Made by a program: the position numbers and the translations under genes
Sequence record: ON000910.1
Length of the DNA stretch: 64,000 nucleotides
Strand: one strand, 5' to 3'
Shown: in pieces, positions 2,933-42,887 of the stretch
Layout: each line of letters opens with the position of its first letter
How positions within the stretch are numbered: position 1 is the first letter of the stretch
Notes under the pieces: generated by a model
What the model was told of the DNA's origin: nothing
Seen by the model: only the letters and a program-made list of their open reading frames with translations
Database searches by the model: none

Positions 2933-3295
2933 TTATTTCCCTTGATTGAATAGTTCATTTTTGCTGTCAATGTAAAGTGAGCGGTACTTCGCTGGGCGCT
3001 CAAACTTGTACATGCCAGTTTCCATTAATTCACCGTTGTCAAGAAACGCATATGTTTCTTTTTCAACGTCGATACGACATAAGCTAGTGCGCTCATCGTT
3101 CATAACACGATACACGTTTGAATGGTCGATTGATGCATTCTCAAGAAAACCTTTTTCGAACTCATCAAGAGCAACAACTACCCAACCGTCAGCTTGATTG
3201 AATTCATTATTGAACCAACCTAGTACTTCAGTTGTGATTTCAAGTTCAATGTGAGTCGTGCTTGTTACTGCATTGTCGCGTAGATGAGTTTTCAT
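2933..3295 (-). CDS. early hypothetical protein
   Basis: Start MKTHLR follows GAGAACATTATG leader of the early promoter. Confidence 0.75.
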   Translation of the reverse strand: MKTHLRDNAVTSTTHIELEITTEVLGWFNNEFNQADGWVVVALDEFEKGFLENASIDHSNVYRVMNDERTSLCRIDVEKETYAFLDNGELMETGMYKFERPAKYRSLYIDSKNELFNQGK

Positions 3296-3365
3296 AATGT
3301 TCTCTGTATCTCGTTTCGATGTAGCTATATTAGGGGTATTCGTCATTCAATGCAACCACTTTTTG
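3293..3365 (-). promoter_or_regulatory. early sigma70-type promoter with conserved leader
   Basis: AAAAAGTGG-TTGCAT-17 nt-TAATAT-AGCT-ACATCGAAACGA, then GAGAACATTATG. Confidence 0.8.
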
Positions 3366-10960: not shown

Positions 10961-11251
10961 TTACACCTCTAGTACTTCACGTGAAAAACCAACACAACCC
11001 GGGATATCACGCCAATCAAAGTTCAAGTAAGATTCAGCACACTTGCTCATTGCAGGACGATTCGCTGCTTTGCGGTCTAAATGACGCTCTGCAATCGAAC
11101 AGATAGAAGACATAGCAATAGACACTTCTTGATCTTGCTGTGCGCGATATGCAGCGCGAAGCTTCTCAACATTACCTTTTGTAATCTTGTCTGATTTCAA
11201 TGTAGCAACTAGATTCATGCAAGCTTTGATTGTTTCAGTTGTGTAGTTCAT
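10961..11251 (-). CDS. early hypothetical protein
   Basis: Directly downstream of promoter cassette. Confidence 0.75.
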   Translation of the reverse strand: MNYTTETIKACMNLVATLKSDKITKGNVEKLRAAYRAQQDQEVSIAMSSICSIAERHLDRKAANRPAMSKCAESYLNFDWRDIPGCVGFSREVLEV

Positions 11252-11323
11252 AATGTTCTCTCTGTATCTCGTTTCGATGTAGCTATAATACGCAAAAAGG
11301 GTCGCCGAAGCAACCCTTTTTTT
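11249..11323 (-). promoter_or_regulatory. early promoter embedded in a terminator hairpin (PeSL-like)
   Basis: AAAAAAAGGGTTGC-TTCG-GCGACCCTTTTT; -35 TTGCTT, 17 nt, -10 TATTAT, then AGCTACATCGAAACGA. Confidence 0.85.
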
Positions 11324-11325
11324 AG

Positions 11326-11979
11326 TTAAATTTGTAATTCACTGAAAATGTATTTCTGCATGAGACGTTTAAGCTCTTTTTTCTCTTGAGTTTCGTTTTC
11401 TTTCTGTTCGCGCTCTTGTTCAAGTTTCATTTTCTTGTCTCGTTGCGTCGCCTCGTCAATGTAACCTTGAATCGTTTTTACAGTGCTTTCAGCGTCCCAG
11501 AAGTCTTGAATGTTATGAGAGTACGTAATCACACCCTCATCACCACCCGCGTACATTTCATCAAAGCGAATACAGACATCACCATCTTCGTCTAACACTA
11601 CGCTTGTCAGCGTGAATTCAGAGCAGTCGAATTGTTCAAATTCCGACAAATTGTATTTGATGCGATTTGCAAACTCAGTCGCGTTGTGAAGAACATTTTG
11701 AACTTTATTCTGGAAGAACGTCATCGTTTCTTCGCGTTCTTCGTCAGTTGTCTGACCCATTTCAAGTAGATGTTTAGCACGCGCAATAGCTTTCTTGTCA
11801 GGACAGTCGTTGGTTTGAATTGAGATTGCATTATCGGACTTATGATAATGATGCAACTCATCAACACTAAACCAATACACATAGACGTAATTTTCTTCAT
11901 CTTCGTGCGCAAGTAACCCAATATCAGCGTATGGGATGTGACTTGAATTGCGACTTGCTTCTTTCAATACGTATTTCAT
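11326..11979 (-). CDS. hypothetical protein (paralog of 11988-12389)
   Basis: DEDGDVCIRF motif; C-terminal coiled coil. Confidence 0.75.
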   Translation of the reverse strand: MKYVLKEASRNSSHIPYADIGLLAHEDEENYVYVYWFSVDELHHYHKSDNAISIQTNDCPDKKAIARAKHLLEMGQTTDEEREETMTFFQNKVQNVLHNATEFANRIKYNLSEFEQFDCSEFTLTSVVLDEDGDVCIRFDEMYAGGDEGVITYSHNIQDFWDAESTVKTIQGYIDEATQRDKKMKLEQEREQKENETQEKKELKRLMQKYIFSELQI

Positions 11980-14579: not shown

Positions 14580-14750
14580 TTAAAATGTATCAGATAGTGT
14601 TGTAATCAGTTCGAAAGATTCTAGCTCATGAACTTCGTACGTGTCAAGAACTAATTCAGCTTGTGAAAGCTTTTGTACTTCACACTTGTTATCTCGATGA
14701 GATTTCACAATGAAATCTTCACCGTTAATACGTCTGATTTGATTTACCAT
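14580..14750 (-). CDS. small protein, 56 aa (gene B; not in track)
   Basis: Hand-translated MVNQIRRINGEDFIVKSHRD...; AAGG RBS. Confidence 0.6.
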   Translation of the reverse strand: MVNQIRRINGEDFIVKSHRDNKCEVQKLSQAELVLDTYEVHELESFELITTLSDTF

Positions 14751-14765
14751 TTTATCTGCCTTTTA
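14727..14765. repeat. 39-bp direct repeat copy 1 (copy 2 at 15799-15837)
   Basis: AATACGTCTGATTTGATTTACCA(T/A)TTTATCTGCCTTTTA, 38/39 identical. Confidence 0.9.
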
Positions 14766-14997
14766 GTTTGTTTACAACCGCTATGAATAACTTTTCTACA
14801 GCAATTGCCGACCCAATCACGATTACAAAGATTGAAATAACAGGCCATAACATACCAATCACTAGAACACGTTGAGCAAAGTCACCCGTTGTCTCTTCTT
14901 TGTTGTTTTTAACTTCGTAGTAAATGTAATACGCGATAATCAACAACATAACACCGAAGTACGAACCGAAGTATACGATAGCTGTAATATCAGGCAT
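14752..14997 (-). CDS. membrane protein (gene Z)
   Basis: Two TM segments; ends LKGR. Confidence 0.7.
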   Translation of the reverse strand: MPDITAIVYFGSYFGVMLLIIAYYIYYEVKNNKEETTGDFAQRVLVIGMLWPVISIFVIVIGSAIAVEKLFIAVVNKLKGR

Positions 14998-15262
14998 TGA
15001 TCACCTCCCAATACTTCTTGTAATTCTCTTGAAAGTGTGTCAGTGCATCATCGTATGTCTCACCGTCGAAATTAACATCTGCCGCTTTGACAAAACACAG
15101 ACGCTTAACCATACCTGGCTTACCGCACGGGTAGAACAAGTCTAATTCGTCATTGAACATGCGAACATCAGTAATGTTATCGCGAAGCTCTTCAGCAGTG
15201 TTAATAGGGATTCTGTCGTATACAACTCGCGATTTAATTAACGCTAACATGCTGTGCCTCAC
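14990..15262 (-). CDS. hypothetical protein
   Basis: 90-aa ORF. Confidence 0.65.
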   Translation of the reverse strand: MRHSMLALIKSRVVYDRIPINTAEELRDNITDVRMFNDELDLFYPCGKPGMVKRLCFVKAADVNFDGETYDDALTHFQENYKKYWEVINA

Positions 15263-15470
15263 CTTGATAATGCTCTAATGATACGCTCGTATGATCTGCA
15301 AGCGAAATTAAACCTTTCTTGAGTAAAGCACGACACGTAATCGTCATCGGCAATACACACGGTCTGTTTTGCTGCTCATGAAAGCATAGCTTGTTATTGC
15401 TAGTGTAAGCGTATGCAATCATCGTGCCGTTGCGTAGACCTTCTAGAATGCGCTCTTGTTGTCTTGTCAT
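15234..15470 (-). CDS. hypothetical protein
   Basis: ATGA-type overlap with upstream stop. Confidence 0.6.
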   Translation of the reverse strand: MTRQQERILEGLRNGTMIAYAYTSNNKLCFHEQQNRPCVLPMTITCRALLKKGLISLADHTSVSLEHYQGEAQHVSVN

Positions 15471-15769
15471 AGTCCCAACGCCCATCGCTCTTCTTTGCTT
15501 AGTTTCGCTAACGCAGATTGCTTTAGACTCTCTCTATGCGCGGCTGTGCTTTCGTCAAGTGACTCGTACACTGTAATTTCTTTAACATCCCAATCAGGAT
15601 ACGCTTCATTTCGCCAGTCGCCTTTTGCAGGCTTGCGACCCATGACACCAGTCTTACCTTTAGTACAAGCCCATGCATCATCTTCGTTTGTGAAATACGC
15701 GGTTGGTTTCATCATACCGCGACCTTCAGTCATGTCAGTTTGATAGCGTACAACATAAATCTTTTGCAT
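15467..15769 (-). CDS. hypothetical protein (gene Y)
   Basis: DMTEGRG motif; TAATG coupling. Confidence 0.75.
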   Translation of the reverse strand: MQKIYVVRYQTDMTEGRGMMKPTAYFTNEDDAWACTKGKTGVMGRKPAKGDWRNEAYPDWDVKEITVYESLDESTAAHRESLKQSALAKLSKEERWALGL

Positions 15770-15822
15770 TACAGTGCTCCCATTACTAGTTCTTCTTGAA
15801 TACGTCTGATTTGATTTACCAA
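15769..15822 (-). pseudogene. 17-codon chimeric mini-ORF (start of gene B fused to end of gene A)
   Basis: TTG GTA AAT CAA ATC AGA CGT ATT CAA GAA GAA CTA GTA ATG GGA GCA CTG TAA. Confidence 0.7.
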
Positions 15823-15823
15823 T

Positions 15824-16072
15824 TTATCTGCCTTTTAAGTTCAAATCACAGCCGATTTTCCAGTCATAGCCCCGCACACTCACAATCGCTTCGTATCTAT
15901 GCGGCAAGTTATAATCAGTGAGATCATCATACCGAAACTGACCTATCTCATCGTCTAACAACGTAGCGCGGTGATTGAGAGATTTCTCAGTTATCCCCAA
16001 CTCTTCTAAACGGCTTCTAAGAATCTCAAGAGCCTCATTTTCTTGTTGTTCGTGCATTCTTACTAAAAACAT
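15824..16072 (-). CDS. hypothetical protein (gene X, apparently inserted)
   Basis: TAATG-coupled to gene A; ends LKGR like gene Z. Confidence 0.7.
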   Translation of the reverse strand: MFLVRMHEQQENEALEILRSRLEELGITEKSLNHRATLLDDEIGQFRYDDLTDYNLPHRYEAIVSVRGYDWKIGCDLNLKGR

Positions 16073-16114
16073 TACAGTGCTCCCATTACTACTAGTTTCT
16101 TCTTGAATACGTCT
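16070..16114. repeat. ~45-bp direct repeat copy 1 (copy 2 at 15767-15807)
   Basis: CATTACAGTGCTCCCATTACTA...TTCTTCTTGAATACGTCT; copy 2 lacks 3+1 nt. Confidence 0.9.
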
Positions 16115-16656
16115 AGACGTTGCTCAAATGCATTGCCTTCAGCGTCGTTGCTCATGATGTACCAATCTTTGTACTTGCCACGCTGCTCAAATGTGATGTC
16201 AGTCATACCAAGAATCTCTGTTGCTTTCTCAGCTACTAAATCACGTGCTGCTTGACCACGTACGTTAGTTTTCTTTGGCGCTTCAGTTTTCTCAACTGCC
16301 TTCGCTTTCGGCTCAACTGCTTTCTCAACTTTTGGCGCAGTGACTTTCGCAACTAGCTCTTCGTATTGACCAACGAAGTCATTTTGTGCAATCGCCATTT
16401 CAGCAATTTGACCCGCAGTGTGCTGAACATCATTCAACTCAGCTTGCAAGTAAGCTTTCGCTTCTTTAAGTGTGTCACCGCATACTTCAGTCACTGATAC
16501 GTGTGCGTCTGAGTTTTCGTCGTAACATACAGCAGCGCGTAGTACAATCTCATCTGCTTCTTCAGTAGCAAAGATAGTGAAATCTTTGTATAAAATAGTG
16601 CTGATACCGAATTCGCGAATGTCTTTGATTTTGATGTTGTTTAGATTGCTTGGCAT
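16072..16656 (-). CDS. early hypothetical protein (gene A)
   Basis: 194 aa; downstream of early promoter; Lys/Ala-rich linker. Confidence 0.8.
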   Translation of the reverse strand: MPSNLNNIKIKDIREFGISTILYKDFTIFATEEADEIVLRAAVCYDENSDAHVSVTEVCGDTLKEAKAYLQAELNDVQHTAGQIAEMAIAQNDFVGQYEELVAKVTAPKVEKAVEPKAKAVEKTEAPKKTNVRGQAARDLVAEKATEILGMTDITFEQRGKYKDWYIMSNDAEGNAFEQRLDVFKKKLVVMGAL

Positions 16657-16750
16657 AATGTTCTCTCTTAGTTAAGTCGTTTAAGATTGTGTATCTCGTT
16701 TCGATGTAGATATAATACTAAATCACCATTCACCACGCAACCACTTTTTG
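16654..16750 (-). promoter_or_regulatory. early promoter with conserved leader
   Basis: AAAAAGTGG-TTGCGT-17 nt-TATTAT...ACATCGAAACGA. Confidence 0.8.
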
Positions 16751-16791
16751 CAAAAAACTTAAACTTTTTTCTTTTATTTTTCTTCAGACCT

Positions 16792-16817
16792 AAAAAAGCC
16801 CCAATTAAGGGGCTTTT
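16792..16817 (-). terminator. rho-independent terminator
   Basis: AAAAGCCCC-loop-GGGGCTTTT. Confidence 0.8.
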
Positions 16818-18669: not shown

Positions 18670-18711
18670 TAGATAATCACCGATATAGTTCCCTGCGTAT
18701 GCGCAATAAAC

Positions 18712-19023
18712 TCAAGAATCATTGCTCAACCTCACGTACTCTTGAAAATCCCACTCTGGTAAATCGCGTGGTAAATCTTCGTGTACGACTTCATCAACAC
18801 CCATTCGCGCCATGCTGTTTTCTAGTTGTTCAATGTGCGTAAGTGTATTACCAAGAGCTTCTTTTAGGCTAGCATTTTCCAATAGCATTTTCTCAACTTG
18901 ATTCATATGCCATTCACTACCACACTTGACAATCACATCACCGTATTTGTCCACCAACGATAGTCTAGAACGTACATACGGCGTTGCTATAAATTCACTT
19001 ATCTTCATTCTTCTCGTAATCAC
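18712..19023 (-). CDS. hypothetical protein
   Basis: Coiled-coil segment. Confidence 0.65.
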   Translation of the reverse strand: MITRRMKISEFIATPYVRSRLSLVDKYGDVIVKCGSEWHMNQVEKMLLENASLKEALGNTLTHIEQLENSMARMGVDEVVHEDLPRDLPEWDFQEYVRLSNDS

Positions 19024-21885: not shown

Positions 21886-22193
21886 TATTCACCCTTTGGT
21901 TTAAAACCGTCTTTACCTTCGATAGTCTGAGCAACCCATATGCTTTCGATATCGTCAAAATCATTTGCGATTTGTAACGGCTCGTTCATCAACGCGATGT
22001 CTTGGCTAATGAGTTGTGAGCGAATTTCACTACTAGTATATGCATCACGAGCTTCGTCCCAATTAATCGATTTTCGACCGTATGACTCTTCGTAGTCCAT
22101 TCGATAAACCCAAAACGCAAACGCTCTACCACTTTTATATGAAATAACTAATAAGTGTCGCGTATAGTCTAAGTCTTTCAAATCATCTTTCAT
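21885..22193 (-). CDS. hypothetical protein
   Basis: ORF tiling with overlaps. Confidence 0.7.
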   Translation of the reverse strand: MKDDLKDLDYTRHLLVISYKSGRAFAFWVYRMDYEESYGRKSINWDEARDAYTSSEIRSQLISQDIALMNEPLQIANDFDDIESIWVAQTIEGKDGFKPKGE

Positions 22194-22444: not shown

Positions 22445-22818
22445 AGTTGTTGCATTGTTTGATGATGTACTTTCAAGTACTCGACAAAACGCGGTACTTC
22501 GTCTTCAGTAATAGAACGAATGAAGAACGGAGCGAAAATACCTTTACGTTGATGCATCATAAAGATCTCAGCGTAGTACGTATCAAGCGGCGTTTCGCAG
22601 TCTTCAGACAAGTTCGGTTTGACATCCCAACGGAATACTAGATTATAATCAACGTCAGCGTCTTCGAACTCGTCTAAAAACTCTGTCATTGTCTCAAATA
22701 CACCACCAGACTCGTTACTATGGTAATTACTATCAGCACAGTAATACGGATGTTCTACTGCTAGTTCAGCTAAAGTCATTTGATACCCTCTATATTGGCG
22801 ATTATAAATTCTAACCAT
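22429..22818 (-). CDS. conserved phage hypothetical protein
   Basis: HPYYC...DYNLVFRWD...QRKG motifs. Confidence 0.75.
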   Translation of the reverse strand: MVRIYNRQYRGYQMTLAELAVEHPYYCADSNYHSNESGGVFETMTEFLDEFEDADVDYNLVFRWDVKPNLSEDCETPLDTYYAEIFMMHQRKGIFAPFFIRSITEDEVPRFVEYLKVHHQTMQQLWKPL

Positions 22819-23249
22819 TGTACACGATACTCATGCAATTTCGACTTGTCATCCCTTGTAATAAAGCTCAAGAATGCAGACAAATGACTTGCAGCTTTTT
22901 TGTCTTGAGGCGGAATATCAAGCGAATCTAAGAATGGTACCTTGATTTTATCCAGTTCTTCGTATGTTGTTCTAAGCTCATGTGCATTACGCTTGTCATT
23001 AAACAAGGTTTCAGCAATCTGGCAACAAGTGTAATCGTTTAACACTGTACTGTCAGTTTTCGATTCAGCGAGTAGCTTCTCAGCAGCCGCTTTGATATGT
23101 TCTTGTAACGTCATAGGGAAATTCTCTGTGAATTCTTCTACAGTTGGACCAATGGCGGGATACGAATGCAATTCAGCTAGTATCTCATCTGGTGTTTTAG
23201 AGCTTAGTATCTCATCGAGAATACCAAGCCGTTCATCTAGACTAAGCAT
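22776..23249 (-). CDS. YTC...WL family paralog 1
   Basis: AAAEKLL...DYTCCQIA...YRVQWLEFII. Confidence 0.75.
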   Translation of the reverse strand: MLSLDERLGILDEILSSKTPDEILAELHSYPAIGPTVEEFTENFPMTLQEHIKAAAEKLLAESKTDSTVLNDYTCCQIAETLFNDKRNAHELRTTYEELDKIKVPFLDSLDIPPQDKKAASHLSAFLSFITRDDKSKLHEYRVQWLEFIIANIEGIK

Positions 23250-23718
23250 TTCTACGGTTCTCGTATTCGCTTGGTTGAGTCAAGATAAACTCTAGCCATT
23301 GGCGACGATATTCAGTAAATAACTCAATGTCAATTTTACCATCGTCTTTAATTGCAATATCATGAATAAACGTACCGCGGTAATAATCGACGTTTAGGCA
23401 TGCTTTGAGCTTAGACATTGCGCATTCAGACAAGTTGATTTTACCTTGTACTGCGTTGTCATAAACTCGCTTAACAAATGGGGCTGCAATCTCGGATAAC
23501 GTGGTTTTCACGTCAACGTAAGACGAATATTTTTCCAATGGATCTTTTGTAGAACGTACAAGAAACGCAATTTCATTACACGTATAGCCGTACATATCGG
23601 TTAAAATATCACCATCTTCTAGCAGTTCTGCGGCAGCTACTTTGATTTCACTTAGATGTTTCATTACATATTCTCCACGATATGTTTCAGCCATGCTTTG
23701 CGTGCAGCTACGAAACAC
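23242..23718 (-). CDS. YTC...WL family paralog 2 (start probably ~23664)
   Basis: AAAELL...GYTCNEIA...YRRQWLEFIL. Confidence 0.75.
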   Translation of the reverse strand: MFRSCTQSMAETYRGEYVMKHLSEIKVAAAELLEDGDILTDMYGYTCNEIAFLVRSTKDPLEKYSSYVDVKTTLSEIAAPFVKRVYDNAVQGKINLSECAMSKLKACLNVDYYRGTFIHDIAIKDDGKIDIELFTEYRRQWLEFILTQPSEYENRRNA

Positions 23719-24795: not shown

Positions 24796-24967
24796 AGTAG
24801 TTAATTTTACCAGCGCGACGTAAGTCAGATTGAGCTTTCATGACTTTTGCAGAAAACGCGAAATCACCATTTGCATTTGATTCAGCAATAAGGTCGTAGA
24901 ACTGGTCTTCTGTCATTGACATAACAAGTTCAATTGCGTCGATTTTAGTAGCGTTTGCGTAAGTCAT
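24794..24967 (-). CDS. small early protein (57 aa)
   Basis: GAGAACATTATG leader. Confidence 0.65.
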   Translation of the reverse strand: MTYANATKIDAIELVMSMTEDQFYDLIAESNANGDFAFSAKVMKAQSDLRRAGKINY

Positions 24968-25040
24968 AATGTTCTCTCTGTATCTCGTTTCGATAAGAGA
25001 ATAATACAGTAAGTGGCTACGGCACGCAACCACTTTTTGT
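24965..25040 (-). promoter_or_regulatory. early promoter in hairpin (PeSL-like)
   Basis: AAGTGGTTGCG-TGC-CGTAGCCACTT; TTGCGT-17 nt-TATTAT; ATCGAAACGA. Confidence 0.8.
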
Positions 25041-25053
25041 ACTTTTTTTGCTT

Positions 25054-25465: not shown

Positions 25466-25783
25466 TTATCCCTTATCTTGGTACATACGTACAGTGTTAG
25501 AAGCAAAATCGATGTCTAAATCGTAGTATTCGCCGACTTGAAAGAAATTATTCTTGGCATTAATCTCGTTAATGCGCTCAATACGTAGCAGTGTATAAGT
25601 CATACCACTATCAATCGTGTAGTCTTGACCTTCAATCATACCGTACTCAGCAGCTAGATAAATGCGAACTGAAGACAAAGCATTACCGTTTTTCGCGTAC
25701 ATGCTCTTATCAAGCTCATGACGCATACCCGCAATTGGGTGACGTGAAACAGTAAATGACTTAGTTTCGTTGATGATTTGCAT
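25466..25783 (-). CDS. early hypothetical protein
   Basis: GAGAATATTATG leader. Confidence 0.7.
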   Translation of the reverse strand: MQIINETKSFTVSRHPIAGMRHELDKSMYAKNGNALSSVRIYLAAEYGMIEGQDYTIDSGMTYTLLRIERINEINAKNNFFQVGEYYDLDIDFASNTVRMYQDKG

Positions 25784-25856
25784 AATATTCTCTCTAGTCG
25801 TTGTCGTTTCGATAAAGCTATAATACAAAAAAGGGCTGCATCGTGCAACCCTTTTA
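25781..25856 (-). promoter_or_regulatory. early promoter in terminator hairpin (PeSL-like)
   Basis: AAAAGGGTTGCA-CGA-TGCAGCCCTTTTTT; TTGCAC-17 nt-TATTAT; ATCGAAACGA. Confidence 0.85.
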
Positions 25857-25861
25857 TTAAA

Positions 25862-27085
25862 TTATTTTCGCTTGGCTCTTTTTGGCATATGACCGCAGCA
25901 CTCATCAATTAATCTTAGTCTCTTAGCTGCACTATAAGCATTCTTTGAATTTGTTCGCCATTCATTGCGAGTCTTGTATCTCAATGCGTCTTCTTTAAGA
26001 TTTGCAAAAGACCATGACATTAATCGAGGTTTCATATGAGCACAACACTCGTCCAACATTCCTCGCTGATTGGCGACAGCAAATGCACCTCTTGATTTTT
26101 TCTTCCATTCAGAACGAGACTTGTAATTCAATGCATCTTCCTTAATGCGTTGTATTGTCCAATATCCAGATTCCTTTCTAGTACTTTCCATATGAGCACA
26201 ACACTCATCAAGCAACCCTCGTTTATGAGCAGCCGAATAAGCCCCAATCGAGTTTAACCGCCATTCAGAACGAGACTTGTATTTCAATGCGTCTTTTTTA
26301 AGTTTTTTCAAAGACCATTTTAACGTGGATCCACCCAACCCACCAGCTTTAGCACGATTTAAAATAATCCATCCATTGTTTCTGTAGTACTCAATGTATT
26401 CTTTCTCGGCAACCTGTGCAAGTTCTTGATCAATGTAATCAGTTATTTTCTCGAATGTAACATTATCAATTCCATAACGCTCTATTAATCCGATGATTTG
26501 ACTTGTTTTGGTCTTATGATCGCGAAAACGAATCTCGGCATTGTAACTCAATCCAATGTAAATCTCATTACCAGCATAGATTCGATATATACAACGTTTC
26601 AGTGCAGTTTTCATAGGTGCATTCATATGAGAACAGCATTCATCTAGAATGCGTTTACTTAAAGCAGCCGAATAAGCCCCTCTTGATTTTTTCTGCCATT
26701 CAGAACGAGACTTGTAATTCAATGCATCTTCCTTAATGCGTTGTATTGTCCAATATCCAGATGGGGTTTGAATACTTGTCATATGAGCACAACACTCATC
26801 AAGCAACCCTCGTTGATAAGCGGTAGCATAAGCACTATTTGAATTTGTTCGCCATTCAGAACGAGAATTATATTTCAATGCATCTTCTTTAAGATTTTCC
26901 AATGACCACTTTGGTCTAGGTCTTGGGTTTTTTTGCATATGAGCACAACACTCGTCAGTCAACCCCTGTTTACGTGCAGACGAATAAGCACCACTTGATT
27001 TTTTCTGCCATTCAGAACGAGAATTATATTTCAATGCATCTTCTTTAAGACGCTCTAATGTCCAATATCTAGGTGGGGTTTTCAT
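25862..27085 (-). CDS. free-standing GIY-YIG endonuclease flanked by 3+3 ~50-aa repeats
   Basis: CIYRIY...IYIGLS...RFRDH...EKEYI...LN; six W..E.LKEDAL.Y.SRSEW......AY......L.DECC.HM repeats. Confidence 0.8.
   Translation of the reverse strand: MKTPPRYWTLERLKEDALKYNSRSEWQKKSSGAYSSARKQGLTDECCAHMQKNPRPRPKWSLENLKEDALKYNSRSEWRTNSNSAYATAYQRGLLDECCAHMTSIQTPSGYWTIQRIKEDALNYKSRSEWQKKSRGAYSAALSKRILDECCSHMNAPMKTALKRCIYRIYAGNEIYIGLSYNAEIRFRDHKTKTSQIIGLIERYGIDNVTFEKITDYIDQELAQVAEKEYIEYYRNNGWIILNRAKAGGLGGSTLKWSLKKLKKDALKYKSRSEWRLNSIGAYSAAHKRGLLDECCAHMESTRKESGYWTIQRIKEDALNYKSRSEWKKKSRGAFAVANQRGMLDECCAHMKPRLMSWSFANLKEDALRYKTRNEWRTNSKNAYSAAKRLRLIDECCGHMPKRAKRK
26105..26171. repeat. 67-bp perfect direct repeat within the GIY-YIG gene (other copy 26696-26762)
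   Basis: Compared base by base. Confidence 0.9.
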
Positions 27086-27146
27086 AATATTCTCCAATTC
27101 AAAAACTGTAGAATATAAAAAAGGGCTGCATAGCGCAACCCTTTTC
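27083..27146 (-). promoter_or_regulatory. early promoter in terminator hairpin (PeSL-like)
   Basis: AAAAGGGTTGCG-CTA-TGCAGCCCTTTTTT; TTGCGC-17 nt-TATTCT; GGAGAATATTATG. Confidence 0.8.
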
Positions 27147-27154
27147 TTTAACTT

Positions 27155-27763
27155 TTACGAATGAAGCTCTTCATCGTACTGACTAGCAGCATATCGACCA
27201 TCAATACGATAATCACCACAATCAGATACGAGTTCATCTGTATCAGAACCAACCGTAAACACTACTAGTTTACCATACGTCTCAACAGCAATTTGTGTCG
27301 GACGTGATACAACAACTGTCGCGTCATGTGCATATGACGATGTACTATCGCTTGCGGCATAAATGTCTATGATCTCACCGACAACTAGCTCGTGCTCTTC
27401 ATCGACAAAATCAGTTTCTTTATACGCATATACAAGACGACCACTCTTCCACTTACAAGGGTACCAATCCCAATCTTTCGCTGACAACTTCAATCGAGCA
27501 TGTACAAGTACCAACTGACCATCGTATTTTGTCTGTGTCTGCTTGTTACCATTTACTTTATCTTCTTCAACTGAGTAAAAAGCACCATTGTCAGATACTA
27601 GCATATAAGTCGGTTGCTCTATACCACGTATACCATCACCCGAGTCAAGGCAATTCAAATAACCAGACCATGTGTTGTAGTACGTCTCAACTCGTACCAT
27701 ACTACCGCTCGGCATAATCGCTTTCTTGTCTACTACTTTCTTATGTCTTTCAATTCGTTTCAT
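27155..27763 (-). CDS. hypothetical protein
   Basis: 202-aa ORF. Confidence 0.7.
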   Translation of the reverse strand: MKRIERHKKVVDKKAIMPSGSMVRVETYYNTWSGYLNCLDSGDGIRGIEQPTYMLVSDNGAFYSVEEDKVNGNKQTQTKYDGQLVLVHARLKLSAKDWDWYPCKWKSGRLVYAYKETDFVDEEHELVVGEIIDIYAASDSTSSYAHDATVVVSRPTQIAVETYGKLVVFTVGSDTDELVSDCGDYRIDGRYAASQYDEELHS

Positions 27764-29763: not shown

Positions 29764-30003
29764 TTACAGTTCAAAAACTTCATTTAGATGTAGAGCATTC
29801 TTTGCTGCTTCTACTACATTAGCAGATTGACTCATGATAACGCGCACTGAATTTTGAATGCTCATCATACGAGTTGTTGAGATTCTTCCGTATATGCCAT
29901 ATGCATTATTTTTAATCGTAATTTCTTGTTCTAATATTTCTATTGCATTACGCGCTGAGGTGCTTAGAGTTTCGTTCGCAGCTTTCTCGATGGTGTCAAT
30001 CAT
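29764..30003 (-). CDS. early hypothetical protein
   Basis: AAGGA RBS; downstream of promoter cassette. Confidence 0.65.
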   Translation of the reverse strand: MIDTIEKAANETLSTSARNAIEILEQEITIKNNAYGIYGRISTTRMMSIQNSVRVIMSQSANVVEAAKNALHLNEVFEL

Positions 30004-31808: not shown

Positions 31809-32159
31809 TTACTCTCCGAACTTTTCACGTAATTGTTCAATGGTAGATGTAGTTTGTTTGATTTGTTCATCAATCGATTGGCGCTGTTCGATTAGTGATT
31901 GGCGAAACATATTCAATGCTTCGGTTCGTGTTTTGAATTGATTCTTCCATTCTAGAACCAATTCAGCGATTTCGTCATCAGTAGCAGTCGTTTCATTATA
32001 AAGATGATGAAACTGAGTAATCAAGTCGATATGCATTGGTGGTCGTTGAGGTTGACGAGCCATTTTATATTCATGTTCATTAAATGGACTTTGAACAAAC
32101 AAATCGCCTTTTACTATTGCTAGATCTTCGATTGATGTGTTGATTCGGTATGCGTTCAT
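31809..32159 (-). CDS. coiled-coil hypothetical protein
   Basis: 116-aa ORF. Confidence 0.65.
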   Translation of the reverse strand: MNAYRINTSIEDLAIVKGDLFVQSPFNEHEYKMARQPQRPPMHIDLITQFHHLYNETTATDDEIAELVLEWKNQFKTRTEALNMFRQSLIEQRQSIDEQIKQTTSTIEQLREKFGE

Positions 32160-32428
32160 ACAAAGTTCTCTAGTGAATTGCTTTTCACTCGTTGATACAA
32201 TAGACGACCAGAATCAGTCTTAGCAACTTTATTCCAATCACTAGAATTATCAAGAGCGCGACAGATTTCACGACGTAATGTACAGTTTTTCATAGTACCA
32301 TCGCCGCGTTCAACACATGCACGAGCAGCAGAGTACTTTGCAATCATATCTTCACGAATTTTGTATACATCTACGTATGCAGTGTTGTAATTGTTTACTT
32401 CAGTTTTTGCTAATTGTTTAATGCTCAT
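32156..32428 (-). CDS. hypothetical protein
   Basis: GAGGA RBS. Confidence 0.7.
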   Translation of the reverse strand: MSIKQLAKTEVNNYNTAYVDVYKIREDMIAKYSAARACVERGDGTMKNCTLRREICRALDNSSDWNKVAKTDSGRLLYQRVKSNSLENFV

Positions 32429-32440
32429 ATTAATTTCCTC

Positions 32441-32460
32441 AAAGGGGCATTACTGCCCCA
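32441..32460 (-). terminator. hairpin, probable terminator after natV
   Basis: GGGGCA-GTAA-TGCCCC-TTT. Confidence 0.6.
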
Positions 32461-32464
32461 TTAG

Positions 32465-33490
32465 TTAGATGCCAGTGAAATACTGAATGATTTGGTAGTG
32501 ATCGTCATACAAACGTTCTTGCATGTCCATTACTTCACTCAGTGAGTACCATTTCGCTGATACAGCATCATCGGCTGGCTTCACTTTCGGGAAAGTGTTG
32601 TCAGGGTTTGGCTGCACTTTGAAGTGATATGCCATTGTGATGCGAGTGTGTGGGTAAGAGCGATTTGGGTTATCGAACATCTTCTCATCTTTGAGCGAGC
32701 CACGCAAGACTTTCTCTGGGACTTTGATGTTAGTTTCTTCTTGTAGTTCACGAATCGCAGCAGTTAAGAATGTTTCTTTCTCATGCTTATGACCGCCAGG
32801 TAATGCTAAACAGCCTTTGCCTGGGTTGAACTTACGCTCGACAAGAAGAACATGACCTGCACACATCACAACGCTGTCAGCACACGCGATATTCAAGTGA
32901 CCTTGGTATGGATAATCTTTAAACTTCTCGATTTCGCGCACTGAGCTATCGTATTCAGCTTTCATTTCAGTGAAATGCTCTGTTTTGCTCCAATCGTCAA
33001 GAAACATCATTGTTTGCTTGGGAATCAGACCAGACATTACAGGGTGATTCAGTAGAATCTCGCTGAAGTACAGTTCTCTGAAGTCAGTTGCAGAGATAAC
33101 TCTGTTATACATCTTCACTGGTTCAGGTTGAAATAGTTTTAACTCAGGGAATAGCTTGAGATAGTAGCTGCTTTCGTCTTTGTCGTAACCAACGATATGA
33201 GTGGCGCCTTTCGTACTAGCACGAACATTTGACTGCCAAACGTCGTCTTTAGCGTAATCACCTAGTGGTACAAAGCGAACTTTGCTTCGAATGTCATCAG
33301 GTAAAGCAACACCCATCATATCGCGTACTTCTTCGAACGTGAAAGGGTTTTTAACTGAACGATGTCGATTAGAGCTACCGATTAAGATAGTCATCTTGTC
33401 TAGGTCAAGCGCGTCGAATGCTTGTGTGATTGCAGATAGATGACCGTTGTGGAATGGACGAAAGCGTCCGATAAAGATTGCGTGTGACAT
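32465..33490 (-). CDS. natV: bifunctional NMN adenylyltransferase / Nudix (ADP-ribose) hydrolase
   Basis: FIGRFRPFHNGH, NPF, SATDFR; Nudix box LPGGH...AAIRELQEET. Confidence 0.93.
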   Translation of the reverse strand: MSHAIFIGRFRPFHNGHLSAITQAFDALDLDKMTILIGSSNRHRSVKNPFTFEEVRDMMGVALPDDIRSKVRFVPLGDYAKDDVWQSNVRASTKGATHIVGYDKDESSYYLKLFPELKLFQPEPVKMYNRVISATDFRELYFSEILLNHPVMSGLIPKQTMMFLDDWSKTEHFTEMKAEYDSSVREIEKFKDYPYQGHLNIACADSVVMCAGHVLLVERKFNPGKGCLALPGGHKHEKETFLTAAIRELQEETNIKVPEKVLRGSLKDEKMFDNPNRSYPHTRITMAYHFKVQPNPDNTFPKVKPADDAVSAKWYSLSEVMDMQERLYDDHYQIIQYFTGI

Positions 33491-33559
33491 ATTGGGCTCC
33501 CCATTTTGTCATTGATTGAGATTAGATTATTACATCTATTATTGTTTGTGTCAAATACT

Positions 33560-34075
33560 TTAAAACTCTTGACCTGCATCAGAACAAATTGCGTTATTAA
33601 GTATTGCCACGGCTTTTGCGACTACACGATCAGTTAAGCCGATCTCAGGGTCGCAGTTTACATAGTTATGACGTTGCCATAACAACATATCAGTGTCATC
33701 ATCTAAGATGACATAGCTTCGAAAGTCGTATCGCTTACCAAGCAACTCTTCATTGTCTTGAATCCATTTAAGAATCTCATTACCACGAAAAGCCCATGAG
33801 TATTGATGGTCGAGCATATCTGTTTTGCCGATACATTCACCATTAACACCCATATCATTAAGCACTGTATTGATCTCATCGATACTAAGACCACAACGCC
33901 ACACACTTGTAAGAACAATGCGTGCGTCAGTTCTTTTAATGAGATCATTTAAACGGTCGACACATCGCGGCGAATAAATCCCTTGATACTCGCCATTCAA
34001 TAGCACGTCCATGTGCTCATCGGCTTCTAAAGCGTTGTTTAGAACGCCGTCTATGTCCAAGAATATAACTTTCAT
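33560..34075 (-). CDS. HAD phosphatase of the Swiss-army-knife RNA-repair type (HAD_SAK_2-like)
   Basis: MKVIFLDIDGVLN; IVLTSVWR; RGNEI; YVILDD; GLT. Confidence 0.85.
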   Translation of the reverse strand: MKVIFLDIDGVLNNALEADEHMDVLLNGEYQGIYSPRCVDRLNDLIKRTDARIVLTSVWRCGLSIDEINTVLNDMGVNGECIGKTDMLDHQYSWAFRGNEILKWIQDNEELLGKRYDFRSYVILDDDTDMLLWQRHNYVNCDPEIGLTDRVVAKAVAILNNAICSDAGQEF

Positions 34076-34079
34076 TATG

Positions 34080-34541
34080 TTACCACTTGCATAATTCACC
34101 GAGTGCGTCATATGCATCATTCATGCCGTGTAGACTAAAATGATACGAGTATGACACACCGTGCCCGTTGTTTACAACATATTCGAGCATATTTCCTGTT
34201 TTGAGCGTATCGATAACATCATCACTATTACCAAGATAAGTCGTGACAGATGATTGTTGTTGTAACTGATTACTCTCGACTCGCACGTATGGGTTCCCAT
34301 CTAGTGAATACCAGATTTCGTCCGGTTTTGCAGCGGTCAGGTATGCTCTCGTTTCATACAACGTGATTGCTTTATCACAGTCAATTGTGAGCACAGCAAG
34401 ACGATTGACTGAGTTCGTGCTTGCAGTGTGTATTGGCTCATGTGTGCGAACATCAACACGATGAACAGTCATCCAATCATCGTGTACGTGTGCGTTCGCA
34501 ATCAATGGCATTATTGCCAAGCTTAACAATGCGAACTTCAT
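34080..34541 (-). CDS. exported (signal peptide) protein
   Basis: MKFALLSLAIMPLIANA, AxA cleavage site. Confidence 0.75.
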   Translation of the reverse strand: MKFALLSLAIMPLIANAHVHDDWMTVHRVDVRTHEPIHTASTNSVNRLAVLTIDCDKAITLYETRAYLTAAKPDEIWYSLDGNPYVRVESNQLQQQSSVTTYLGNSDDVIDTLKTGNMLEYVVNNGHGVSYSYHFSLHGMNDAYDALGELCKW

Positions 34542-34592
34542 ATTGTGCTTCCTTGTGCTTGTTGCACACGTGCAAATATGGCGCTGTTAGTT

Positions 34593-35354
34593 TTACACTG
34601 TATGCATACCACTGCGTCGCAATGAAGACAGTTCATGGGAGCGCAGTGAGCCACTTTTCTTGAGCTTTGTCTCTTTAGGTTGAACGATTTTCTTTGCTTC
34701 TTCAGTGATGATTTCGACTAATTCAATATCGGTATAATGAGTATCGAGTAGTCGACCTTCTTTACTCACGGGTTGAATACCAACCGAGATTGTCCCGTTT
34801 GCTTGATTGAAAATGGCAGTGACTAAGCCAGTTGCGCCAGTTGCCATGCATCGAGCTTTTTGCAGCAATTCCACTTTAAGCTCATCACGCTCACGCTTTT
34901 GACGATTGTTGATGATCTTATCGTGAATCGAGTGACCTGTTTGCTTACAGCTAATGACCCGCGCAGATGCATAAATATTCGTTTCATGCTCTGCGTATGG
35001 CTTAATCAAAAGCACATTAGGTGCTGCGTTCACTGAGTATTGAATTTCAGTTACGATACCTTTCGCTTCTGAAACTGTGTCTTCAACTTCATCACCAAGA
35101 CGAATTGGCATTGTAGTATTTGTCTCTGCGAAGATAGCTTCATACTCTTCAACTCGATTAGAATTGACGATTTCGACTAATTTCGAGCTAAAAACATGAG
35201 TTTTCACTTCATTTTTAGCGTCTTTTGCTCGAACTTCAAGCAATTCACACCCTGCGATGCACTGTGTGATACCGATTACCGTACCTTCGATGCCAGTTGT
35301 GATTGATTTAACAAGCATGCCGAAGCGATGCCCAGATGTAGTTGCAATACTCAT
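34593..35354 (-). CDS. protein with three tandem SH3/KOW-like repeats
   Basis: Three G..V....(T/S)G..G.V..I modules. Confidence 0.75.
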   Translation of the reverse strand: MSIATTSGHRFGMLVKSITTGIEGTVIGITQCIAGCELLEVRAKDAKNEVKTHVFSSKLVEIVNSNRVEEYEAIFAETNTTMPIRLGDEVEDTVSEAKGIVTEIQYSVNAAPNVLLIKPYAEHETNIYASARVISCKQTGHSIHDKIINNRQKRERDELKVELLQKARCMATGATGLVTAIFNQANGTISVGIQPVSKEGRLLDTHYTDIELVEIITEEAKKIVQPKETKLKKSGSLRSHELSSLRRSGMHTV

Positions 35355-35418
35355 AATATATCACTCTTATTTATTGGAATTTAACACATTATTCACATGA
35401 TTTCATATGAATTTGCTA

Positions 35419-35598
35419 TTAATCTCGCTTTTGTTTCAAATCGTAGATTGTTTTACCGTCTACGTTTGCTAATGCTTCTGCATATGCCGTACGAGCAACA
35501 GACTTACAATCGTTGAACATTCTACCAGACGGCGTGCATAACCATGCACGCGCTTTGTCTAAGTATTCTTGAACTTCTTCAGCAGTTGCTAAGATCAT
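35419..35598 (-). CDS. small protein (59 aa, not in track)
   Basis: MILATAEEVQEYLDKARAW...; ATGA overlap. Confidence 0.55.
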   Translation of the reverse strand: MILATAEEVQEYLDKARAWLCTPSGRMFNDCKSVARTAYAEALANVDGKTIYDLKQKRD

Positions 35599-35918
35599 AG
35601 AGCCAATTCCTCTAGTTCTTCAGCAGAACCTGCGCCAACGTCCATGACTTTCTCTAATGCAATCCAACGAGTGCCATTGTAGTATTGACAGTTATTGTTC
35701 CACATGTTGTGACGCCACAAATCCCATGGTACAGATTGATCGATTACAGCAGTCCATGTACACGATGCAATTGCAGGTACACGAGTATAACTGACATAAC
35801 CAAGTGCTAATACAGCTACAAGAACAGCAGCAGTGATACGAGGGTGTGATTTAGCTTCTTGAGCGAGAATCACAGTGTTGTCAAGCCAGTTAGGCATTTT
35901 CGGCATTTTGAATTTCAT
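35595..35918 (-). CDS. single-TM protein
   Basis: TM then Cys/Trp-rich domain. Confidence 0.7.
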   Translation of the reverse strand: MKFKMPKMPNWLDNTVILAQEAKSHPRITAAVLVAVLALGYVSYTRVPAIASCTWTAVIDQSVPWDLWRHNMWNNNCQYYNGTRWIALEKVMDVGAGSAEELEELAL

Positions 35919-35955
35919 GATTTTGTTCTCTTGTTTCGTTAGGCGTTGAGTGACA

Positions 35956-35993
35956 TATTACTGCCACTCACACGTTTTGTCAACTACTTTTTG
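35956..35993 (-). promoter_or_regulatory. early promoter
   Basis: AAAAAGTAG-TTGACA-17 nt-TAATAT. Confidence 0.75.
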
Positions 35994-35996
35994 AAA

Positions 35997-37262
35997 TTAA
36001 TTGTACAATGCCCAATCTGTTGGTCGAGTTAGTGCAACATAAGCAAGTTGCTGAACAATCTCTGGCTCGGCGTATCCCATGTCTTGAGTGTAGATACACA
36101 CACCTTTAACAGTCGTACCTTGTGACTTGTGAGTTGTTGATGCACCAAGAGACTTAGTTTCAATCATCTGCTCTTTCAAGCCCCAGAAAGCACGCCAGTA
36201 GCGTTTAGTATTACCACGCATCGACTTGTAAGTACCAGCAGCAACCATCAAGTAACGCGCAAAGCGTTCTTTCTGTAGGTCATCCCACAGAACCGTGAAC
36301 TCATACACATTACCATCGTCTTTCTCAACAGTTAGCACAGCAACATCAAACGATTCGTTGTCTACTTTTGGTAACATACCATCGATTGTTTTCTGACGAA
36401 CATCAAGAATCTTAACGATTTCACCATTGTCAATGACACAAACAGGGTACTTCCCGTTTGACTGCATAACTGGCATTTGTGTTACAAGATACTCATTCGG
36501 GATAAATGGTTCGCTCGTGTTGTAAATGTGCTCACGAATAATACCATTGAACGTATCAACACAATCGTTTGTGTAAGCAAGAATACGATAGTCAAGCAAG
36601 TCTTCAGGTGTGTTGATTTTACTCAAGTAAGTGTCTAGCATTTTATTCACGTTCGGAACGTGCAAAACGCCTTGACGCAGCTCTTTTGACCAGTTAGTGC
36701 GTAGCCATTCACCTTGACGTACTTCAGTTGCGACTTGAATCAACGGGTTGTCTTTTGCTTGTCGTACAACTTCAGTCATTTCATAAGTGTTGAACTTAGT
36801 GAACATCGGTGAGATAATACCAGGCTCATGTTTCACTGGTTGAAGCTGATACTTATCACCAACACCTAGAATGCGACACTTGCGTGGCATTGTTTTACCC
36901 ATGATGTCGTATAGCTCATTGTCGATCATACTTGCTTCTTCGACCACAAGCACATCAATTTCGTCTAGACCTTCAACATCACCAGCTTGCTTGAAGTGCT
37001 TCTGATCTTCATACGTGTCTGGGTGAATTTTCAGTAGACTGTGAATCGTTGATACATCACGACCTGTCATTTTGTGTAGCACGTTCTTTGCTTGGTGAGT
37101 TGGTGCTACCATTGCTACGTTCTTGCCTTTTGCGTCAAGTGCCGCGAGAATAGACTTCATTAAGAATGTCTTACCAGAACCCGCGGGACCAGAAATAGTC
37201 ATATGCCCATCAGAGTCGAGAAACGCATTCATTGCACCTTGTTGGCAATTAGTTAAACCCAC
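35997..37262 (-). CDS. dda: Dda DNA helicase (SF1B)
   Basis: GPAGSGKT, APTHQA, TIHSLLKI, VEEASM, GDKYQLQPV, HKSQGTT; GTG start after GAGGA. Confidence 0.95.
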   Translation of the reverse strand: MGLTNCQQGAMNAFLDSDGHMTISGPAGSGKTFLMKSILAALDAKGKNVAMVAPTHQAKNVLHKMTGRDVSTIHSLLKIHPDTYEDQKHFKQAGDVEGLDEIDVLVVEEASMIDNELYDIMGKTMPRKCRILGVGDKYQLQPVKHEPGIISPMFTKFNTYEMTEVVRQAKDNPLIQVATEVRQGEWLRTNWSKELRQGVLHVPNVNKMLDTYLSKINTPEDLLDYRILAYTNDCVDTFNGIIREHIYNTSEPFIPNEYLVTQMPVMQSNGKYPVCVIDNGEIVKILDVRQKTIDGMLPKVDNESFDVAVLTVEKDDGNVYEFTVLWDDLQKERFARYLMVAAGTYKSMRGNTKRYWRAFWGLKEQMIETKSLGASTTHKSQGTTVKGVCIYTQDMGYAEPEIVQQLAYVALTRPTDWALYN

Positions 37263-37272
37263 TATCTTTTCC

Positions 37273-37647
37273 TCATCTATATTTCCAATTGATCGTATGC
37301 ACTTTGATTGAACGCTCTCGACAAATGTCAATCATGTTCTGAGTGCCGCGACCGCCTTTGAATGCCAAACATATGTCTGGCTTGAGATCAGCCATGTCGG
37401 AGTTGCGTTTAAAACCCGCAGAATCGCCATATTTGTCCCACTCAGCTTCGCACGTGATTAAATCAACATCGATGTGCGCTTGATTCGCCCAATCTTGCGC
37501 AAGTCGATCAGCACCAAGTGCGCCGCCTTCTATAATAGTCATTCGCCCTATATAGAAGCTATTGTATAGCTTATCTAACGCAGCATAAACAAGTTTTCTA
37601 TCCCTGAACTTACGACCACCACAGACGAGTACTCTCGGTGACATCAT
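37273..37647 (-). CDS. SLOG family (YspA/DUF2493-like) protein
   Basis: VLVCGGR, IIEGGALGAD, AGFKRN, AFKGGRGT. Confidence 0.85.
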   Translation of the reverse strand: MMSPRVLVCGGRKFRDRKLVYAALDKLYNSFYIGRMTIIEGGALGADRLAQDWANQAHIDVDLITCEAEWDKYGDSAGFKRNSDMADLKPDICLAFKGGRGTQNMIDICRERSIKVHTINWKYR

Positions 37648-38099
37648 TGGTCAATTAACCAACCATATAGACAGAACTCAAGTAGTTGATGAGGCATGAG
37701 CGATGTGCTATCACCAAAATGTCCGTCGAAATGAAACTCAAGTTCTTTACCAGTCTCTTGGTTGAATATGTTTGTTGTGGTATCATGAACCCCACCGCAG
37801 CATTCACAATGCCAGTGATGTTCTTCTTGAGTCACATCGACGTGAGGGAATAGGTCTGTGATTAACTCGAACTCGTCTGGTTCTAGTTCGCGTGTTTTAA
37901 GCAGTGTTTCGATTATATTACGAGCGTCGTATTTTTCGCGTACGACAGTGCAGCCAATTGAAGGGATTTCAACCATAGCTGTCTTGTACATTTCACAGTT
38001 GTAGTTTTGATCGATGTATGATTCCCATGTTGCAGATAGCAAAAGGTCATCATTGAACATGAATTGAAGGGAGTTTTGGTCTTGAATTAGTGTAATCAT
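37644..38099 (-). CDS. hypothetical protein with CECCG motif
   Basis: 151 aa; HFDGHFG. Confidence 0.7.
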   Translation of the reverse strand: MITLIQDQNSLQFMFNDDLLLSATWESYIDQNYNCEMYKTAMVEIPSIGCTVVREKYDARNIIETLLKTRELEPDEFELITDLFPHVDVTQEEHHWHCECCGGVHDTTTNIFNQETGKELEFHFDGHFGDSTSLMPHQLLEFCLYGWLIDQ

Positions 38100-38113
38100 A
38101 TATTTCTCTCAAT

Positions 38114-38136
38114 AAAAAAGCGCCCGTAGGCGCTTT
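38114..38136 (-). terminator. rho-independent terminator
   Basis: AAAGCGCC-TACG-GGCGCTTT-TTT. Confidence 0.8.
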
Positions 38137-38141
38137 GTGTT

Positions 38142-38393: not shown

Positions 38394-38418
38394 GTTAAAC
38401 CTCTTTATTTGTTTAACG

Positions 38419-38426
38419 TATTTATA
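38419..38426 (-). promoter_or_regulatory. T4-type late promoter
   Basis: TATAAATA on minus strand. Confidence 0.7.
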
Positions 38427-38427
38427 A

Positions 38428-42884: not shown

Positions 42885-42887
42885 AAA

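Follow-up and report, generated by a model that had tools for sequence, protein, structure and literature searches.

A microhomology-bounded insertion of an orphan gene in an early-gene array of Vibrio phage XZ1

How does an orphan gene come to stand between two genes that are directly adjacent in related phages, with pieces of two other gene boundaries left beside it? This question is raised by a locus in a 64-kb window of sequence record ON000910.1, the genome of Vibrio phage XZ1, which the window matches at 100% identity (the window is the whole stretch of 64,000 nucleotides analysed; all coordinates are window positions, and record position = window position + 124,000). XZ1 is a virulent, KVP40-like Schizotequatrovirus of the T4 superfamily with a genome of 249.5 kb. 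The genes concerned lie in transcription order A-X-Y-g3-g4-Z-B, all on the minus strand, in a tightly packed early operon. Relative to the nearest relatives, a 303-bp segment between A and Y is found in XZ1 only; it contains the orphan gene X, a 39-nt copy of the boundary between the tail of Z and the start of B, and a 41-nt copy of the tail of A. We conclude that this scar was probably left by illegitimate recombination at microhomologies, within the hyperplastic array of early genes of this T4-like vibriophage. The genes are as follows:

16072..16656, minus strand: gene A, 194 aa, phrog_13185, function not known; the conserved left anchor of the variable array
15824..16072, minus strand: gene X, an 82-aa orphan specific to XZ1; X-like up to codon 80, with two final codons and a stop that come from Z
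Between 15824 and 15769, minus strand: X-Y spacer, 54 nt
15467..15769, minus strand: gene Y, 100 aa, phrog_5370; directly after A in six relatives
14752..15470, minus strand: genes g3, g4 and Z, the remainder of the variable cassette array
14752..14997, minus strand: gene Z, 81 aa, phrog_17783, with two predicted membrane-like hydrophobic stretches
14580..14750, minus strand: gene B, 56 aa, phrog_16019; the conserved right anchor, directly after A in KVP40-type phages

The scar and the sequences from which its pieces derive are made up of the following parts, J1 to J3 denoting the joints:

16070..16114, minus strand: parent copy of the A tail, 45 nt, with the 9-mer AGACGTATT, the Shine-Dalgarno (SD) motif GGGAG and TAATG (A stop/X start, joint J1)
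TAATG at A/X, minus strand: joint J1, the stop/start overlap of A
TAAAA at 15837-15833, minus strand: joint J2, the left edge of the filler, where X codon 80 is fused to the last codons of Z
15799..15837, minus strand: filler, 39 nt from the Z-tail/B-start boundary, 38/39 identical including the T at 15837
14727..14765, minus strand: Z-tail/B-start boundary, parent of the filler, including the 9-mer at 14727-14735
15799..15807, minus strand: joint J3, AGACGTATT in one copy, at which the B start gives way to the A tail (the last 32 nt of A)
15767..15807, minus strand: second copy of the A tail, 41 nt, made up of an exact 18-mer (15807-15790) and an exact 22-mer (15788-15767)
15769..15822, minus strand: chimeric mini open reading frame (mini-ORF) of 17 codons from a TTG start at 15822, reading (M)VNQIRRIQEELVMGAL; its TAA at 15771-15769 overlaps the ATG of Y as TAATG

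In the whole 64 kb there are just three copies of the 9-mer AGACGTATT, in the A tail (16106-16114), in the scar (15799-15807) and in the start of B (14727-14735). Across 15837-15767 the downstream B-start sequence comes first and the upstream A-tail sequence second, so that J3 is a head-to-tail joint. The filler includes the stop codon of X (15826-15824) and a start codon of B mutated from ATG to TTG (15822-15820). Searched as a 38-nt pattern (the last codons of Z, the ribosome-binding site (RBS) of B and its first eight codons), it is exact at 14727-14764, recurs with one mismatch at 15799-15836 and found no match in 100 shuffles. The second A tail carries both the SD GGGAG (15781-15777) and the TAATG (15771-15767) within its exact 22-mer, and is short of one A in an AAA run and of one GTA unit in GTAGTA. 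The copies are spaced 303 nt apart for the A tails and 1,072 nt apart for the Z/B boundaries. This anatomy is beyond chance expectation, and the A/X/Y scar is the sole boundary duplication of at least 22 nt, and the sole one with a third-party filler, in the window. A first-pass annotation, made from the letters alone, had described the locus as A-X-[B start/A end]-Y...Z-B. Its coordinates, counts and gene order all hold on re-checking the sequence, as do the fusion at a 9-mer shared by A and B, the 38/39 copy of the RBS and start of B with its ATG-to-TTG change, the ~41-nt copy of the A end minus 1 nt and one GTA, and the chimeric mini-ORF in frame to the TAATG that starts Y. Only its naming of the 39-bp piece as a copy of B's RBS and start needs widening: the copy is real, but it also holds the last codons of Z and begins inside the upstream gene.

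Among the thirty other records that share this region, the interval between A and B is filled in many ways. The ancestral-type state, in which the overlapping TAATG links A straight to Y and g3-g4-Z-B come next, is found in R10Z, VH7D, phi-ST2, R11Z, Va3 and ValKK3. A is followed directly by B in KVP40, PVA8 and about ten further records, QD01 and VS2 read A-g4'-Z'-B, VS1 has one ORF more, and the arrangement of nt-1 is again different, as is the array of the D484/6E35.1a clade (A'-o183-X'-o351-Z'-g4'). From PVA23 Y is precisely missing, start codon to next start codon, and the TAATG of A leads into g3 coding sequence; in phi-Grn1 an unannotated 52-codon ORF, starting at the TAATG of A, replaces Y. 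Both of these changes at the A/Y boundary (phi-Grn1, L006 2939-3097; PVA23, L007 2936-2945) are clean, at the level of whole ORFs, and scarless. In all, the interval has at least six different contents among the relatives, and the number of small ORFs in it ranges from none to five. A and B therefore behave as conserved anchors of a hyperplastic interval.

The relatives also give a direction to the changes in the scar. Every one of them has the canonical A tail, the parent copy being identical in all ValKK3-like relatives, and in every one B starts with ATG; the two deletions in the second copy and the TTG are therefore derived. The A protein is 100% identical in amino acid sequence to its homologues in R10Z, phi-ST2, R11Z, Va3, phi-Grn1 and PVA23. 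Over 16817-16092 XZ1 and R10Z have 0 nt differences, the first 213 nt of Y are likewise identical to R10Z, and in a comparison of single-nucleotide polymorphisms (SNPs) A is identical to four relatives. Three changes fall in 71 duplicated nt against 0 in 939 flanking nt (XZ1 vs R10Z; Fisher p ~2e-4 for the 57-nt spacer). On this comparison the scar is older or faster-evolving than its flanks, which may have been refreshed by homologous recombination. Further to the right, at 15517-14661, there are eighteen SNPs private to XZ1, at which six relatives all agree against it, in g3-g4-Z and the 5' part of B; their clustering suggests that this patch came separately, by recombination, from a lineage not yet sampled. 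As a sign of a parental switch exactly at the scar the pattern is only suggestive, the SNPs starting ~270 nt right of it, and we did not use it as evidence for any path.

The relatives of X reveal the third joint. A tblastn search of 50,697 phage records found X in XZ1 and, at 54-56% aa identity, in 18 records of the D484/6E35.1a clade (V. crassostreae). X is an intact ORF; compared with the D484/6E35.1a X' it has 55-57% aa identity, and its alignment with these homologues (X') has 45 invariant columns. X' occupies the same interval in D484/6E35.1a, which makes X one of the cassettes from which this array draws. The D484 X' ends ...DLNLKSKHEIRRTK, whereas X of XZ1 ends ...DLNLKGR, 8 codons shorter. 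KLKGR-stop is the native C-terminus of Z: the 41%-identical Z' of D484 ends ..EKLKGR, and QD01 and VS1 have the near-match ..KLKGL. Left of TAAAA the sequence resembles X' and is unlike Z; right of it, it is 38/39 identical to the Z/B boundary. We therefore place at this 5-nt match a fusion of X to the tail of Z (J2). The microhomologies of J2 and J3 bound the 39-nt piece, which is thus a filler, and with J1 the insertion has three joints. As the order in D484 is X'-o351-Z', a simple deletion of ~0.6 kb would yield J2.

Other relatives of X were not found in IMG/VR (searched with X and with the X/X' alignment), in JGI metagenomes, in a word-indexed library of 5.8 billion proteins or in a HMMER scan of 1.84 billion representatives. 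An exact 21-mer across J3 was absent from IMG/VR, metagenomes and GTDB genomes, and IMG/VR searched with A returned VH7D and KVP40 only. A, Y, g3, g4, Z and B each belong to PHROG families of unknown function and X to none, and Pfam, NCBIfam and PADLOC gave no match for any of these genes; for X a PDB sequence search was likewise negative. A single-sequence AlphaFold2 model of X was of low confidence (predicted local distance difference test, pLDDT, 59) and was not used. Z is unannotated in the GenBank record of XZ1, yet annotated in relatives. Within A, at 16274-16354, three imperfect 24-nt tandem-like repeats encode a lysine/alanine-rich linker, in which VH7D has an 18-nt deletion, and a second locus in KVP40 (32108-39338) encodes a 52%-identical relative of residues 103-187 of A.

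The sequences themselves show the anatomy, the microhomologies, the A-Y state of the relatives and the derived changes, whereas the order and number of the events, the partner genomes and any selection are inferred. The phage's own recombination and replication machinery, acting during co-infection or between concatemer copies, would have placed X between A and Y in an insertion bounded by J1, J2 and J3. The downstream-to-upstream joint J3 is the diagnostic novel joint of an unequal crossover, equivalent to the junction of a tandem duplication or a circle, and J2 looks like an earlier or later deletion within an X...Z array like that of D484-type phages. With the A tail duplicated, SD and TAATG included, X and Y each keep the same start signal in one polycistronic early mRNA. 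Recombinase-free illegitimate recombination at the 9-bp match is supported by these data; the scar copies have diverged, whereas XZ1 and R10Z do not differ in A or in the first 213 nt of Y, a contrast that speaks for a genuine event of some age rather than an assembly duplicate. Several points weigh against this explanation. No sequenced genome has X beside a ValKK3-type A tail or B start, and the donor is hypothetical. The best relative of X has ~55% aa identity, so that J1 and J2 are placed only approximately, and three joints require at least two events or one complex event, whose order is not reconstructable. Moreover, the scar structure is in one genome record only (ON000910.1). The four paths that lead to it, namely unequal crossover, a circle, tandem duplication with replacement, and a multi-switch event, are inseparable in this genome.

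Other cassettes in the window differ between XZ1 and R10Z, as seen when the 64 kb were aligned to that phage, and several of these indels lie between direct repeats of 4-19 nt that coincide with the start or stop of a gene. At 16818, between the end of a gene at 16819 and the terminator in front of A, XZ1 is without a 610-nt two-ORF block, TAAT-bounded at a TAATG overlap, that is present in all ValKK3-like relatives; QD01, VS1, VS2, PVA8 and D484 have no ORF at this position and KVP40 has one. At 21887-22184 XZ1 has a 298-nt ORF in common with ValKK3 alone. The 10-mer AATGAAAGAT stands as a direct repeat on either side of it, since the start and first codons of this ORF are also those of the gene downstream. 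At 29766-29996 a 231-nt ORF of XZ1, ValKK3 and VS1 is flanked by a ~19-nt imperfect repeat of RBS and start, AAGGAAAACAYTATGATYG. R10Z is longer by 778 nt at 61289-61297, bounded by the 9-nt repeat TTACCAAAT, which looks like another microhomology-bounded indel. Three extra or replacement segments of XZ1 (18682-18994, 22780-23265 and 56431-57179, of 313, 486 and 749 nt) have no obvious flanking repeat.

Of the alternatives, the first to be weighed is the one that the first-pass annotation had put forward. In it recombination between the 9-mers of a close A-X-B relative released a circle, which entered an A-Y...Z-B genome through one crossover in the ~45-nt A tail, and the 1-nt deletion was kept for termination-reinitiation coupling to Y. 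The geometry is an exact fit, orphan-ORF mini-circles have been detected by inverse PCR in RB49 and phi1 (PMC2839356), and the cassettes at 21887-22184 and 29766-29996 have duplicated RBS/start flanks, as Campbell-type integration leaves. The A-Y junction via TAATG that was expected in relatives is there in six of them. Against this path, an A-X-B genome was found nowhere in the 50,697 phage records, IMG/VR, JGI metagenomes, GTDB genomes or the two protein libraries. Such a donor would already need J2, which the circle does not explain, and must therefore descend from a genome with Z-B. Furthermore, the circle is topologically equivalent to the crossover but takes two steps where one unequal crossover suffices. 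We consider this route rather unlikely; the circle, the A-X-B donor and the selected frameshift are unproven.

As to the coupling clause, a fusion reconstructed with the canonical A tail and starting from the ATG of B would be in frame with Y and add 19 N-terminal residues to it; the 1-nt deletion shifts the fusion into the frame of A, ending at TAATG. Both scar deletions sit in slippage-prone repeats, and any 1-nt deletion anywhere in the tail gives the same frame. Y has its own SD, spaced 7 nt from its start in the 22-mer that was kept exact, and no RNA structure that could make Y need upstream translation was found in the scar region (z = +1.4, +0.6). The change from ATG to TTG would cut translation of the mini-ORF, the opposite of what selection for coupling predicts. 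The idea that coupling was repaired is therefore weak. Most likely, the chimeric mini-ORF is a by-product of the fusion, its start weakened and its frame uncoupled from Y by a 1-nt slippage deletion. The three changes fit the removal of an aberrant fusion protein better than coupling, with neutral decay or error-prone repair synthesis equally possible, and the deletions, by splitting the 45-nt direct repeat into 18 + 22 nt, could stabilise X.

A bolder version of this thought is an adaptive clean-up after integrase-free capture. The TTG and the 1-nt deletion would prevent a B'-A'-Y fusion and restore the stop/start overlap of Y, the split repeat would stabilise X, and translation-initiation regions would serve as portable recombination-and-expression adaptors for orphan genes. 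It is the flanking of other XZ1 cassettes by duplicated RBS/start sequences, taken with the changes in the scar, that leads to the adaptor reading, which we offer as speculation and hold to be improbable. If it were true, such adaptors in giant T4-like phages would be a recombinase-free analogue of integron cassettes.

A tandem duplication within one lineage would also produce J3. Sister or concatemer exchange at the 9-mer would have doubled a 1,072-bp unit from A tail to B start, giving Y-g3-g4-Z twice, and the first copy would then have been replaced by X from a D484-like donor via A and TAAAA. J3 is the cross-repeat joint of T4 amplifications, which form at 6-10-bp microhomology and after which headful packaging promotes removal of the additional DNA (PMC9391042). 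One such unit has the length by which the Z/B copies are spaced, 1,072 nt, and X stands where the first copy of Y-g3-g4-Z would be. In XZ1, however, the full segment between the parental sites is not doubled, just its 39- and 41-nt ends, as would suit a crossover between two parents or a replacement at a later time; there is no remnant of a first Y-g3-g4 copy, and a doubled Y-Z array is in no relative. At least three illegitimate or homologous steps would be needed. We regard this account as doubtful.

Alternatively, the scar may stem from a single event resembling microhomology-mediated break-induced replication (MMBIR) or fork stalling and template switching (FoSTeS). A strand copying X would have switched at TAAAA to the Z tail, run ~25 nt into B, and switched again at AGACGTATT to the A tail and Y, error-prone synthesis giving the substitution and the two slippage deletions. 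All three joints are at microhomologies, two of them (J2 and J3) bounding a short filler that was copied from 1,072 nt downstream, and the three changes are packed into the duplicated nucleotides with none in the flanks. T4-type phages, moreover, replicate mostly by recombination-dependent, join-copy synthesis. Nevertheless, one genome cannot tell such an event from serial simple ones, and the excess of changes may just reflect age if the flanks have been homogenised by recombination with R10Z-like phages. A single event of this kind is improbable in our view.

Should the polarity be reversed, the XZ1 arrangement would be the older one and the A-Y relatives would have lost X between the A-tail repeats. 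Direct repeats of 18 and 22 nt do flank X, a crossover in the 22-mer regenerates A-TAATG-Y precisely, and cassettes are mosaically distributed among these phages. Yet none of the other ValKK3-like and KVP40-like records has X, which would require repeated loss or a spreading deletion allele, and the illegitimate events that made J2 and J3 would still be required, all of which renders this order of events quite improbable. Finally, an assembly artefact or a chimeric assembly of a mixed phage stock is barely credible: the structure is in a single record, but the duplicated pieces are set apart from their parents by a substitution and two deletions and hence are no simple assembly duplication, assemblers collapse repeats and do not make diverged ones, and X is a conserved, intact ORF joined in frame at a TAATG overlap.

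Dedicated insertion systems were rejected. For a site-specific cassette system of integron type (integrase and attachment sites), Pfam, NCBIfam and PADLOC found no recombinase gene from A to B, and the scar has no significant RNA or DNA structure. X is not a moron, as it begins at the TAATG of A and no terminator-like site follows it. Insertion by a homing endonuclease was dismissed as X is without an endonuclease domain and the nearest GIY-YIG-like ORF, with a sub-threshold score, is ~10 kb off. That ORF (25862-27097, minus strand, 411 aa) has six ~52-aa repeats (..LKEDALKY.SRSEW....AY..A....L.DECC.HM) around a core with a sub-threshold GIY-YIG match (17.9 bits vs a cutoff of 22.6), and may be a homing-endonuclease-like gene. 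Its Pfam matches to TcdB_N (below cutoff) and Insulin (no individually significant domain) were taken as spurious, and the R10Z copy is strongly diverged in the repeats.

A cassette flanked by promoter early stem loops (PeSLs) was likewise rejected. No promoter or terminator motif flanks X, and the sole nearby PeSL-like element lies upstream of A:

16693..16817, minus strand: terminator and promoter cassette, a stem-loop terminator (16817-16794) followed by a repeated early-promoter/5' untranslated region (5'UTR) cassette, PeSL-like; it heads the A-X-Y...B operon

This cassette is a member of repeat families D3/D5, with copies at ~3.3, 11.3, 25.0, 25.8, 27.1, 42.8 and 60.3 kb. The dispersed 57-84-nt repeats (3281-3364, 11239-11331, 16693-16758, 24955-25047, 25774-25866, 27098-27156, 42832-42890 and 60229-60315) have, on the coding strand, a stem-loop or GC-rich box, a -10-like TATTAT and a conserved 5'UTR ending in RBS + ATG, and they resemble the PeSL promoter-terminator cassettes of nt-1 and KVP40 (PMC4122927).

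How does the scar compare with known systems? The closest is T4 itself, in which tandem amplifications and deletions arise at 6-10-bp microhomologies with one copy kept at the joint (Srikant, Guegler and Laub 2022, PMC9391042, where Kumagai 1993 and Wu 1991 are also cited), and microhomology-bounded deletions arose elsewhere in the T4 genomes of those experiments (PMC9391042). XZ1 shares with these amplifications a T4-type genome, a downstream-to-upstream joint with a single copy of the microhomology (9 bp here), small accessory genes as the part affected and the lack of a dedicated recombinase. Unlike them, it keeps just the 39- and 41-nt duplications, with a foreign ORF in the place of the first unit, and the event is natural and aged, with secondary mutations, rather than a laboratory amplification.

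In RB49 and phi1, orphan-ORF mini-circles formed between promoter/stem-loop repeats were proposed as integrase-free vectors (Arbiol 2010, PMC2839356), and PeSL elements have been described for nt-1 and KVP40 (Comeau 2014, PMC4122927). The integrase-free gene acquisition that the first-pass annotation had proposed thus agrees with the lack of any recombinase signature nearby, but its mini-circle version was already suggested for T4-type phages in 2010. PeSL shuffling and the XZ1 scar have in common a hyperplastic T4-like region, gain or loss of single ORFans without an integrase, and a model of circle integration; a PeSL-like cassette heads the XZ1 operon, and the cargo is an orphan ORF with no family match (X). 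A further likeness is that the reported crossovers of that system lie between the -10/SD and the ATG, near translation start regions (PMC2839356, PMC4122927). Unlike those cassettes, X has no promoter or stem-loop on either side, it was exchanged at a stop/start overlap and at 5-9-nt matches within coding sequence, and a third-party filler is present.

Models of phage mosaicism by illegitimate or homeologous recombination, in which very short homologies (5-13 bp) are usable (Martinsohn 2008, PMC2327257), likewise predict novel joints at or near gene boundaries between otherwise unrelated modules. Most mosaic joints are without a footprint, whereas XZ1 retains both parental partners in one genome. 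MMBIR and FoSTeS, template switching with templated insertions, are established from human and yeast genomics and to our knowledge have never been demonstrated for this phage group. The XZ1 scar resembles their products in having several joints at microhomologies, a short filler whose template lies nearby, and slippage mutations in a cluster, although in XZ1 such an origin is inseparable from serial events.

Taken together, integrase-free cassette shuffling in T4-type phages is already published, and the XZ1 scar fits the known behaviour of the T4 family as a well-preserved natural instance of it. It calls for no new mechanism and provides a natural counterpart to the laboratory experiments on T4 amplification and deletion. 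As the joint and both parental sequences survive together, what happened can be followed at the level of single bases: for a virulent phage of 250 kb to take up an orphan gene, 5-9-nt matches at gene ends sufficed, and all the neighbours of that gene are still translatable.

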